A stretch of 63,771 nt of DNA, filler included, from Octopus bimaculoides (Eukaryota), in NCBI RefSeq assembly GCF_001194135.2. It is 8 parts of 8 records of this genome, joined end to end, with 100 filler letters (N's around TTAATTAATTAA, not from the genome) between each part and the next. Parts side by side here need not be neighbours in the genome. Positions count along the whole stretch, not along the records: positions 61,794 to 63,771 come from NC_068982.1; 7 more parts are not named here. One strand, 5' to 3'. The position numbers and the translations under genes were made by a program. Under the pieces are notes generated by a model, which was given only the letters and a program-made list of their open reading frames with translations, made no database searches and had not been told where the DNA came from. This document shows positions 9,141 to 63,771 of the stretch, piece after piece. The number at the start of each line of letters is the position of its first letter. Positions within the stretch are counted from its first letter, which is position 1.

Positions 9141-9380
9141 ATCTTCTTACACTAACACGTGCGCATACACTTGCACATACATATATAAATTTGCACCCTC
9201 TCCCACATATATATAAGTAAAGCCAATCGCATCATCAAAGTGCTGTTCCATGTTACTTCTAATTTAACCCCAGGTAGACCTTCCGCCAGCTGATTATCGG
9301 TGTGACGCTGCACCATATACAATATATATTTCTAGCAGGAGGAGCAAACCTCTACCATCATGTAGCAGGCAACAGGATTG

Positions 9381-9938
9381 GGATCTATTTTAAAACGGGG
9401 GCCACATTTTTCATTAATGTTTTACGTAGTGTTTTTGGTACCGAAAGACTTTCAAACTTCGTATACTTATCTATTTTGTGTTATAGAACAGAAAAATTTA
9501 TTTCATGTAAAAAATTGTCTTATTTCGATAATTTCAACCAATCACTGACAAGTATTCAGTTGTTTATATTTACTCCTTTGGCTGATTAAGCCGTAGCTTC
9601 GTTTTATTTGCTTTTTTCATTTTAAATTTGCTTTTTTCATTTTCTTTTTTTCTTCTTCGTTTTATTTGCTGTTTTACCCTAACCCTATCACCGATAGAAT
9701 TGTTTCAGAATCGTTTGTTTATGTAGTCGGCACTTAATGTATATCGGCTGAATGGACGTCAGTGATTGGTTGAAATTACAGAAATACGACAACTTTAACA
9801 TGGAATAAATTAGGGATTTCTTTTTCTTTTTAAAGAAGACTAAGAGAAAAAGATGTTTTATATGACACATTCTACCAGTGTTCCAAGTTTCAAAGTGTTT
9901 CGTTAATGAAAAATGTGGCCCCCGTTTTAAAAAAATCC
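9381..9938. mobile_element. MITE family X copy 1 (GG-initial TIRs, 8-bp TSD; Merlin-like)
   Basis: TSD caggattg at 9373-9380 and 9939-9946. ~38-bp TIRs ggatctattttaaaacgggggccacatttttcattaa, and longer imperfect inverted subterminal blocks. Confidence 0.9.
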
Positions 9939-10642
9939 CAGGATTGCGAGACTGACTCAATTTCGAGCTGGTTGGCTCATCCTCAGTCGTAAGCACCCGG
10001 TCGCCAAAGCGATAGCCAGGGGCCGCACCAGCTAGCAATATATTGTAAACAAAGCGACAATCGATCACTGATTTACAAGCAAAAAAGCTAGTTGTAAAAT
10101 CTCAAGAAGAGAGCAAAGTAGTAACTATACTAACAATTAAAGTCAATCGCCACATCAAAGTCGCTGTTCCATGTTACTACTAGTTTAACCCCAGGCAGAT
10201 CTTCTGCCAACTGGTTATCGGTGCGGCGCTGCATCCTGTATATAAAATATATATGCCTAGCAGGAGATACATACATGGTACCGTGCAGCGGCATACCTAT
10301 ACAAATACTTATCAGATTATGTAGAATACGATTATATCGAATTTTAATGTAAGAAATAAAATTGTCGAGCCTGTACACACGGACACACTGACACACATCA
10401 CAATTTGTTTTTAGAAATTTCAAGTTTTATTTTGTAGATACATATGATATGTGCCAATATGTATGTATGCGAGCCCACCATTTTTTTTTTTTTACCAGAT
10501 CCGGGTATAATCGTAATCTACACCATCTGATTTAAACCTGTGAGCTATGACCATGGAAACAACATGAAACGGAACGCAGGGATCTTAGGAATTTGTCATA
10601 CTGTTTCCTTAAGTTCGGGATTCAATAATTATCTTTTTTCGA

Positions 10643-60210: not shown

Positions 60211-61794
60211 GAGGAGGGGGGGGAAACGAAAATATAAATATCAGATACAACATAGGGTGCGTGATTGTCAGGGTGCTTTCCAACCACGTGCTTCCGCGTT
60301 CGAATTTAAACGATAGCAACTGGGCCGGATGTTTTCTACTTACAGCTTTGCATTGACAGATAACTTGTGAGTAGAATTTTGCAGAAAGGAATTCTCTTGG
60401 TCTTATTTATGTACATAAGATGTATACACACGTTAACAAACATACATATAAGTAGACAAACGCTTGTATATATTTGCGCGCGTATATGTAAGCGAAGGCA
60501 CACAGTCACCTCAGACTCATATATATATATATATATACACACACACACGCACACTGACCAATATATAGTCCGTGTTTATGTATATATGTATCTATCTGTC
60601 TATCTTTCTATCTATCTATCNNNNNNNNNNNNNNNNNNNNNNNNNNNNNNNNNNNNNNNNNNNNNNNNNNNNNNNNNNNNNNNNNNNNNNNNNNNNNNNN
60701 NNNNNNNNNNNNNNNNNNNNNNNNNNNNNNNNNNNNNNNNNNNNNNNNNNNNNNNNNNNNNNNNNNNNNNNNNNNNNNNNNNNNNNNNNNNNNNNNNNNN
60801 NNNNNNNNNNNNNNNNNNNNNNNNNNNNNNNNNNNNNNNNNNNNNNNNNNNNNNNNNNNNNNNNNNNNNNNNNNNNNNNNNNNNNNNNNNNNNNNNNNNN
60901 NNNNNNNNNNNNNNNNNNNNNNNNNNNNNNNNNNNNNNNNNNNNNNNNNNNNNNNNNNNNNNNNNNNNNNNNNNNNNNNNNNNNNNNNNNNNNNNNNNNN
61001 NNNNNNNNNNNNNNNNNNNNNNNNNNNNNNNNNNNNNNNNNNNNNNNNNNNNNNNNNNNNNNNNNNNNNNNNNNNNNNNNNNNNNNNNNNNNNNNNNNNN
61101 NNNNNNNNNNNNNNNNNNNNNNNNNNNNNNNNNNNNNNNNNNNNNNNNNNNNNNNNNNNNNNNNNTAAATATATAGGAGTCAGTATAAGATGCTTCACCA
61201 ACATACTGAAAATGTATATATATATATACACACATACATATACATACATATACACACGCACACATACATGTCTTGGCATGTAGAAGTATATATGTATACT
61301 GACATTTCAGTGTGAGAGACATTAACCCATCCAAAACCATGGAAATCTATAACATCTCTTAATCATTTATTATTTGATGCCAACATTTTAGTCGCACATC
61401 CGCAGCTTAATCGGTGATGAAACTCAAGCACAGTTAAACGATTACATCATTGATTAGGATGGAAAGAGGCCGATAAAAGTTTTACCTGCAATAAGAAACT
61501 ATTAAGGGTAATTCATAGTTTTCTTTTTGTCTTTTTTTTTTTGGGTGGTGGGGTTCAAAGCTGATATGTGTCTTCCACGCTGTAATGGCTATAGTATCAA
61601 ATCTGTCACAAAACAAATCATTTAATCACTTCCCAGACAATTACATTTCCGATCAAGATACACACACACACGCACACACACACACACACACACNNNNNNN
61701 NNNNNNNNNNNNNNNNNNNNNNNNNNNNNNNNNNNNNTTAATTAATTAANNNNNNNNNNNNNNNNNNNNNNNNNNNNNNNNNNNNNNNNNNNNT

Positions 61795-62260
61795 TGTAAT
61801 TTTAAACTTTGTTCCTCGTTTGAAGGTAAATTCAGAGCCTTCAAGTAGGTAAGGGCAGGTGCCACAATTAGGGCGTGCACATTTTTTAACTGATGGGGGT
61901 GGAAGTGGTGTATGTAGTTTGGAATTGGTTAATAATGTTTTCAAAGATTTGTGTTGCCTTTTGCATTTAAGGACTTAATGATATTGTTCATTTTCGGGTC
62001 TGTGGTGAGTAAGGGGAGGTTTTGTTTAATTGTGGTGAATGCTTCGATGTGGTGAATGCTCCGAGTTAAATGAGTCGCCATATCAGTATTATAAATTTGT
62101 TTCAATTTTTTTAAATAAACTTCTCAGACCCTCAAACTTTCTAGCAACTTCTCATCGTTTGACAGTATTTTTCAGGGAACGATGTTCGAAAGGCATAAAG
62201 TGCTTTGTTTCTGTTTATCGCTTCTTTTTATATCATCTAATTTCATTTTGTTAAACATAG
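61795..62260 (-). pseudogene. Penelope-like element remnant (linker and Cys-rich region preceding GIY-YIG)
   Basis: FTTIKQNLPLLTTDPKMNNII / KRQHKSLKTLLTNSKL..VKKCARPNCGTCPYLLEGSEFTFK. The GIY-YIG motif itself would fall in the adjacent gap. Confidence 0.72.
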
Positions 62261-62544
62261 TGATTTTGTCCAGATGTACGTCTAAGCTATTACAAATTAA
62301 AATCTAATACAAAATGAGGCATTAGAAAATACACGTGCTCAAGATGAGAAGCGATTACATACTTCATATATATAAGTGTTAATGTGCGAGTGGATATTAC
62401 CAAAGTACATATGGCATCGCGGCAATTACACCGACGCGTCAAAAATGCTGTAGGAAGGGTACGGATGCAGACTCATGTTTTTGAATAGCTTTCATCTTGA
62501 AATTATATATTCTTGTATAAATATGTATGTGTGTCTGTGTGTGA

Positions 62545-62742
<198 letters not shown>

Positions 62743-62864
62743 AGGCACTACTTGAAACCTTTGGTGATTTGTTATTGCTTGCTTTCAAGTAAAGAATAAC
62801 TGGTAATTAAGGTAATTAAGAACTATCCGAAATCTTTCATAATAGACAAAATGATAATATAAAT

Positions 62865-63410
62865 GCTCTGATGCAGTACCAGGTACTGGCTCCCATGGCT
62901 CCTAACTTTAAATGATTGGAAGTGTTTTCATGCACTTGTTTTGTCCTGGTATAAAAGATGGACTACAGATAATATTCTTCTCAACATCAGAGATTTGCTT
63001 GTCATTTGTTTGACCTTAACCAGCTGAGCATGTCTCTTGGTGGCTGACAATATGGCGACTGATCCCGAACAGAAGTAGTGGGCGGGGTGCATCATAGCCT
63101 TGTGCTGAGAGGAATTCTTTGATGTTTGAATAATTCACCCCTGGAAACATAAGTGCTTCGTTCAACATCCTTAAACAACCCTTATTCAAGGACCTTTTGA
63201 GTGAGATGGGAATCTCGACCAAAAGAAATTTCTAACTGGGCCTTACCTGCATGGTTGTGCGCTGTTTACCTTGATATGAGATCACCATGTCACGCACATA
63301 TGGTTATGATGCATGTGTCTGATGTACCCTTATCAGACGGGTAGTCATGATGAGTATACTGGGCTTCGTATATTTTACTTCAGTGTCAATAGATGGCATG
63401 AACTGCTCTC
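62865..63410 (+). mobile_element. Non-coding ~550-bp interspersed repeat, copy 2 (longer 5' end)
   Basis: Homologous to 1714-2197, with ~70 extra 5' bases (gctctgatgcagtaccagg...). Preceded by a degenerate AAT tract and fused at its 3' end to R4/Dong RT. Confidence 0.85.
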
Positions 63411-63420
63411 TTATTCCAAG

Positions 63421-63771
63421 ATGATCTTAGAAGATTGTCACAAGCGACACAAAAACTTGTCAATAGCCTGGATAGACTATAAAAAGGCCTTTGATAGCCT
63501 ACCACATAGCTGGATTAGGAAATGTCTGGAAATGTATAAAATAGCTCCTACTCTGCGAAACTTTTTATCTGTAAGTATGAGATCATGGAGAACCACACTG
63601 GTGTTGAACAATGACAATGAATCTCTAAATGCTGGAGATGTAAGAATTTCATGTGGCATTTTCCAGGGTGACTCACTATCACCACTCCTCTTCTGTCTAG
63701 CCCTAATACCGCTCTCAAAATTGCTCAATGATGCACAGTATGATTATAAAATATTTGATAAAAATATAAAT
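63421..63771 (+). mobile_element. R4/Dong-clade LINE reverse transcriptase, open to the window edge (missed by the ORF track)
   Basis: MILEDCHKRHKNLSIAWIDYKKAFDSLPHSWIRKCLEMYKIAPTLRNFLSVSMRSWRTTLVLNNDNESLNAGDVRISCGIFQGDSLSPLLFCLALIPLSKLLNDAQYDYKIFDKNIN: 117 uninterrupted codons with WIDYKKAFDS and GIFQGDSLSPLLF RT motifs. Confidence 0.92.

Follow-up and report, generated by a model that had tools for sequence, protein, structure and literature searches.

Retroposon families are recognised by their many copies, which share a fixed 3' end and a tail while their 5' ends are ragged. Insertions may also combine sources, as in U6/L1 chimeras, which are single insertions made from two transcripts. 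To our knowledge, no parasites of a LINE with a restriction-like endonuclease are well described other than R2 SIDEs. These short internally deleted elements are internal deletions of full-length R2 (Eickbush and Eickbush, 2012; PMC3414825). R2 encodes a ribozyme at its 5' end and requires its 3' sequences for protein-RNA binding and for the start of target-primed reverse transcription (TPRT) (PMC3414825). Given this 3' sequence requirement, a partner of an R2-clade LINE would be expected to carry the 3' end of that LINE. Persaeus is likewise a SIDE, derived from CR1 (PMC6740152). For Dong, the target is known to be TAA microsatellites (PMC3812793), and in Octopus vulgaris Dong-R4 accounts for the most recently active LINE insertions, in a genome that consists of ~66% repeats and holds 893 recently active 'Unclassified SINE' families (PMC13282606).

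The window is a composite stretch of Octopus bimaculoides DNA of 63,771 nucleotides, filler included, and all positions given without a locus name count along it. The DNA analysed here is 61794-63771, which contains one copy of a candidate stretch. The original prediction proposed this copy (62865-63410) as a candidate non-autonomous, non-tRNA retroposon mobilised by an R4/Dong LINE. It also described another copy at 1714-2197, outside the DNA analysed here, as lacking the first ~70 bp and ending in (AAT)n.

A non-coding stretch beside a Dong-type LINE

The features that we placed along the analysed DNA are as follows.

61794-62105, minus strand: two neighbouring partial ORFs, truncated by the left edge, with a C-x5-C-x2-C knuckle at their end
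62545-62735, no strand assigned: compound microsatellite (AAT)~33 (AAG)~23 (AAC)~10, from Tandem Repeats Finder
62736-62864: AT-rich spacer, 129 bp
62838-62864, no strand assigned: imperfect (TAA)n tract, CATAATAGACAAAATGATAATATAAAT, immediately before the candidate stretch
62865-63390, no strand assigned: candidate stretch, 0.53 kb, non-coding
63088-63104 and 63297-63313 (63088-63313), plus strand: long-range complementary arms, 17 nt, 82%
63391-63771, plus strand: Dong/R4-type LINE, 5'-truncated inside the RT domain (Pfam RVT_1, open frame)

The 62865-63390 stretch is non-coding. By composition it stands out from its left-hand surroundings, with 43% G+C against 25-36% upstream; the step itself, at 62860, is from 25-30% to ~43%. 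An ORF scan found nothing longer than 68 aa, and none of the ORFs matched Pfam. The 68-aa ORF had no homologue among 5.8 billion proteins, and the six-frame translation of 62740-63400 had none in the same database at E<=10.

Searches for small-RNA heads and promoters gave the same picture of absence within the stretch. ARAGORN predicted no tRNA gene, and an Rfam cmscan at E<=10, covering tRNA, 5S, 7SL, snRNA and all ribozyme models, returned no family. The stretch contains no A box when up to 1 mismatch is allowed and, with up to 2, no B box; the sole B-box match lies in the LINE. The stretch is therefore without the tRNA, 7SL, 5S or snRNA head of a classical SINE and without an internal Pol III promoter. 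Nor does any inverted repeat link the ends of either 62865-63410 or 62745-63410, and so the terminal inverted repeats of a DNA transposon or MITE are missing as well. The original prediction had described this copy as having no ORF, no TIRs and no Pol III A/B boxes; on all of these points our scans agree with it, the box scans having covered 62865-~63390. By eye, the minus strand at ~63010-63030 resembles a tRNA D-arm; we set this likeness aside, since ARAGORN, Rfam and the box scans do not support it.

A 5' self-cleaving ribozyme, for which the original prediction had proposed a search, was found neither by Rfam (E<=10) nor by a loose custom descriptor of HDV-like folds. None of the descriptor's matches begins 10 nt or less from 62865 or 62745; the 3 that lie elsewhere compare with 0-3 in shuffles. 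Folded as a whole, the stretch has z = -2.45 on the plus strand and -0.70 on the minus strand, and none of its local 160-nt windows folds significantly. The main source of the whole-stretch signal is the helix between 63088-63104 and 63297-63313, which, in this single sequence, may be due to chance. We accordingly give little weight to a structured-RNA reading of the z = -2.45 value, which no local window supports.

The adjoining LINE starts at ~63391 (+/-10), and its open frame continues past the right edge at 63771. Its RT fragment covers positions 55-143 of the Pfam RVT_1 profile (E=1.5e-10), is 86% identical in aa sequence to P0061, a predicted protein of O. vulgaris, shows ~90% nt identity to locus L001, and aligns to aa ~500-700 of full-length relatives (1100-1230 aa). 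Homology to 265 relatives begins at 63382-63421 (tblastn), and identity to relatives drops at ~63391 from ~65-70% to noise. Upstream, no LINE coding was found in any frame of 61794-63390. Given these homology starts and the absence of upstream LINE coding, sequence comparison indicates that the copy in the window is 5'-truncated, or internally deleted, at ~aa 530 of its ORF. An apparent continuation of LINE homology as far as 63319 ('P.Q.G', across a 10-aa gap) was discarded as a chance extension. Ahead of the fragment, an ATG at 63313 begins 26 further codons of open RT frame.

The stretch and the LINE abut, with at most 7 bases (ATGGCAT) between them. For 62865-63410 it is thus correct, as originally claimed, that the copy touches R4/Dong sequence: a Dong-type RT fragment abuts its 3' end. 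The AT skew is negative in the stretch (T>A on the plus strand) and positive in the A-rich LINE, and this change of sign argues that two different sequences meet at the junction.

Further characters of the LINE come from its relatives. L001 is a 20.5-kb O. vulgaris locus on chromosome OX597814.1 that encodes P0061; it carries a paralogous Dong copy, 5'-truncated at ~aa 300. In this copy a CCHC knuckle is followed by a PD-(D/E)xK-like (restriction-like endonuclease) C-terminus (...KPDIII...LIDMTVP...KYKD...), and a 3'UTR of ~190 nt is followed by (AAT)5. Full-length relatives carry RVT_1 only and no APE (Exo_endo_phos) domain (Pfam), and their best solved-structure (PDB) matches are all R2 proteins. 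The markers of a Dong/R4 element are thus spread over several sequences, with the RT in the window copy, the CCHC knuckle and restriction-like endonuclease in L001, and the lack of APE in the relatives. At the level of sequence, the knuckle and endonuclease C-terminus of the paralogue, its (AAT)n end, the missing APE domain and the R2 structure matches confirm the adjoining LINE as Dong/R4-type.

L001 also contains one 176-nt sequence twice in inverted orientation (L001:9832-10007, plus strand, and L001:10855-11030, minus strand), the two being 98% complementary. Both break the LINE ORF, and the homologous site of the window copy is without them. The pair stems either from two insertions of a small repeat or from an inverted duplication.

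The Dong 3' end and the TAA-type setting

A near-complete relative from another host, L002, also has its 3' end in (TAA)n. In the 3'UTRs of L001 and L002 a hairpin precedes the (AAT)n/(TAA)n junction by ~55 nt (L001 ~11920-11945; L002 ~12145-12170). It reads GTCTC-TGGGT-GAGAC in octopus and GTTCC-TGGCT-GGAAC in L002, so that, in the two sequences compared, two base pairs are changed on both sides. This conserved hairpin is a candidate for the element that the Dong reverse transcriptase recognises. L002 and a further locus, L003, come from ENA metagenome assemblies (ERZ25067570, ERZ25878469), in which megabase contigs of clearly animal host DNA, very AT-rich, carry a near-complete TAA-targeting Dong-type LINE along with Pox_A32-like ATPase ORFs. 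The top ENA matches reach at most 70% aa and 67% nt identity; they originate from another, very AT-rich host, and so no octopus sequence was obtained from them.

The stretch shows none of these 3' characters. Its local alignments to the L001 Dong 3'UTR and to the LINE (9200-11985) scored no higher than shuffles, and nothing in the LINE downstream of aa ~300 resembles it (L001, one Dong family compared). An alignment of its ends to Dong UTRs had been put forward in the original prediction, and for the 3'UTR it yielded no similarity (L001, one family). The 5' region of the Dong copy in the distant host was not similar to the stretch either. The conserved 3' hairpin motif has no match in the stretch or elsewhere in 61794-63771. 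No (AAT)n tail is present at the 3' end of the 62865-63390 copy, and the sole (AAT)n of 61794-63771 (62545-62642) lies ~220 bp upstream of the stretch's 5' end. With one Dong family compared, then, the stretch has neither the shared 3' end nor the simple-repeat tail that marks a LINE-dependent retroposon.

The surroundings of the stretch are of TAA type. In the compound microsatellite, which ends ~130 bp upstream of the stretch, the AAG and AAC blocks are 100% matches and the AAT block 97%. The tract at 62838-62864 matches (TAA)n at 19/27 positions, against a background of 10.1 +/- 2.0 (99th percentile 16), and is the top (TAA)n-like 27-mer in 61794-63771 outside the microsatellite. The truncated Dong copy in L001 is also preceded by a TAA-like tract (17/27). 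At the start of the LINE in the window, the match to (TAA)n is only 8-11/27 and no TAA units are left. The stretch thus has a TAA-like flank on its 5' side, while its 3' side is taken up by the LINE. A 5' border at 62865 is compatible with Dong-type integration, either of the stretch alone or of stretch and LINE as a unit; we rate this as suggestive only, because the tract sits in the AT-rich fringe of the microsatellite.

Farther left, the minus-strand ORF fragments at 61794-62105 read ...KGNTNLKTLLTNSKLHTPLPPPSVKKCARPNCGTCPYLLEGSEFTFKRGTKFKIT and had no Pfam match. Their C-x5-C-x2-C knuckle seems to resemble the linker that precedes the GIY-YIG nuclease in Penelope-like elements, and the fragments are possibly the remnant of a Penelope-like or GIY-YIG element. 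Within this interval, at 62031-62064, a 17-nt unit (TGTGGTGAATGCTYCGA) is tandemly duplicated in perfect register with 94% identity.

Searches for further copies of the stretch returned no matches, a result uninformative on its copy number in octopus. Exact 23-31-mers were not found in JGI metagenome contigs and GTDB genomes, and six 15-16-mers were not found in the full text of ~8 million papers. Twelve k-mers, taken on both strands, were missing from 400 kb of an O. vulgaris transcriptome supplement (PMC9115989). This last test is uninformative because its positive control, Dong RT k-mers in the same supplement, also gave no match. Neither the 20.5-kb L001 locus nor the two ENA loci hold a copy (blastn, nhmmer); for O. 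vulgaris, 20.5 kb is too little sequence for this to carry any meaning.

Possible origins of the junction

The reading that we prefer, with a confidence somewhat short of even, is that the stretch is pre-existing unclassified DNA next to which a 5'-truncated Dong copy inserted, in two separate events. The stretch would then probably be one copy of an unclassified interspersed repeat, of which an octopus genome has many. Two events are suggested by the abrupt end of LINE homology at ~63391 with no LINE coding upstream, and by a stretch that has neither similarity to the LINE from mid-ORF to 3' end nor the Dong 3' hairpin. Given the repeat load and the active Dong-R4 lineages reported from O. 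vulgaris (PMC13282606), nested or adjacent repeats are also the default expectation. In such a sequence of events, 62865-63390 would already have been present as non-coding DNA bordering a TAA-type microsatellite region, and a Dong-type LINE would later have integrated immediately 3' of it. The Dong restriction-like endonuclease would have cut (TAA)n, and the RNA would have been copied by TPRT until reverse transcription halted, or met a break in the RNA, within the RT-coding region, leaving a dead 5'-truncated copy from ~63391. The contact between stretch and LINE would reflect the target preference of Dong and the repeat density of the genome rather than a parasite-host relationship. This order is inferred, as is the disappearance of TAA units from the 5' junction of the LINE. 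Against two events, that junction has no TAA units, and the best TAA-like tract borders the stretch on its 5' side, which would fit the entry of stretch and LINE as a unit.

Entry as a unit could have come about if the stretch were the leader, or 5'UTR, of this very Dong element, with ~1.6 kb of N-terminal coding sequence lost by internal deletion to give a SIDE-like intermediate. We consider this origin unlikely, although the TAA-like target tract lies where it predicts, at the stretch's 5' boundary and not at the LINE start, the two sequences abut almost directly, and the RT frame runs open back to the ATG at 63313. The AT skew is unlike on the two sides of the junction, and large internal deletions are much rarer than simple 5' truncation. 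The L001 copy shows that internal deletions do occur in the Dong family at hand. The size of the stretch would suit a leader: in O. vulgaris the mean length of recently active Dong-R4 insertions is ~4.2 kb (4,732,901 bp over 1129 insertions; PMC13282606), which leaves roughly 0.5 kb once an ORF of ~3.5 kb and a 3'UTR of ~0.2 kb are subtracted. Against this, the leader of the related Dong in another host is apparently ~100 bp and without similarity to the stretch, though conservation of UTRs is unexpected at such a distance. A unit could also have been assembled by a template switch, the Dong RT jumping during TPRT from the 5' end of a broken LINE RNA to the 3' end of another RNA, from which the stretch would derive. 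R2-clade reverse transcriptases do jump templates in vitro, and both the direct head-to-tail junction and the restriction of the TAA-like tract to the outer 5' boundary agree with such a chimera. These events are rare compared with simple truncation, the stretch has no independent support as a transcript, and nothing in 61794-63771 separates a chimera from the two-event model; we regard this origin as very improbable.

The original proposal makes the stretch a non-tRNA, SINE-like retroposon mobilised by Dong. In the form considered here, a promoter-less element would have been copied by Dong into (TAA)n, and the truncated LINE would later have hit its 3' TAA tail. This origin has in its favour that the top TAA tract of 61794-63771 is flush with the stretch's 5' boundary, much as a similar tract precedes the bona fide truncated Dong copy in L001, that the neighbour is of confirmed Dong type, and that octopus combines hundreds of unclassified SINE families with active Dong lineages. 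The missing Pol III head also agrees with the term 'non-tRNA'. The 62865-63390 copy nevertheless carries no tail, is not similar to the Dong 3'UTR (one 3'UTR family compared), is missing the hairpin that is conserved across hosts, and has no ribozyme or HDV-like fold at its 5' end, and we doubt that it arose in this way. A Dong-mobilised non-autonomous family might do without a Pol III head, Dong 3'UTR and hairpin altogether if a (UAA)n-type tail alone annealed to the cut (TAA)n, a mode of mobilisation that seems to us distinctly unlikely. Under the two-event reading, to which we return as the preferred one, the stretch as a single copy looks ordinary for now. It cannot yet be labelled a retroposon, and to do so would be premature.

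What is at stake differs between these origins. A head-less retroposon driven by Dong would be among very few described parasites of restriction-like-endonuclease LINEs, and would exploit a site-specific LINE by a relaxed mode, unlike R2 SIDEs. It would bear on how Dong chooses its templates, by 3' structure or by pairing of a tail with the TAA target, and might account in part for the hundreds of 'unclassified SINE' families reported from octopus genomes. If the stretch is instead flanking or unclassified repeat DNA, or a Dong leader, the locus would be nothing out of the ordinary, a dead LINE insertion in a genome rich in repeats.

Comparison with known systems

SIDEs, both those of R2 and the CR1-derived Persaeus, are non-autonomous, LINE-dependent elements that have no ORF and no Pol III head, and the stretch is likewise ORF-less and without a Pol III head. 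SIDEs are shortened by internal deletion from their parent LINE. The stretch has neither a Dong-like 3' end (one family compared) nor a ribozyme. For these two reasons we do not file it as a SIDE.

Classical SINEs, with which we group the 'Unclassified SINE' families of O. vulgaris (PMC13282606) for this comparison, resemble the stretch in having no ORF, in occurring in a SINE-rich genome and in size, ~0.5 kb being long for a SINE and possible. They are unlike it in their tRNA, 7SL, 5S or snRNA head, internal promoter and tail, all of which are missing in the 62865-63390 copy.

LINE-mediated chimeras of the U6/L1 kind offer a parallel in arrangement. There, too, foreign sequence is joined head-to-tail to a 5'-truncated LINE, and target-type sequence is present at the outer border only. 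The foreign part here, by contrast, matches no known small RNA (Rfam). Compared with Dong/R4-clade LINEs, the stretch has no coding or nt similarity from aa ~300 to the 3' end, but the neighbouring RT fragment is of this kind and the surroundings are a TAA-type microsatellite region.
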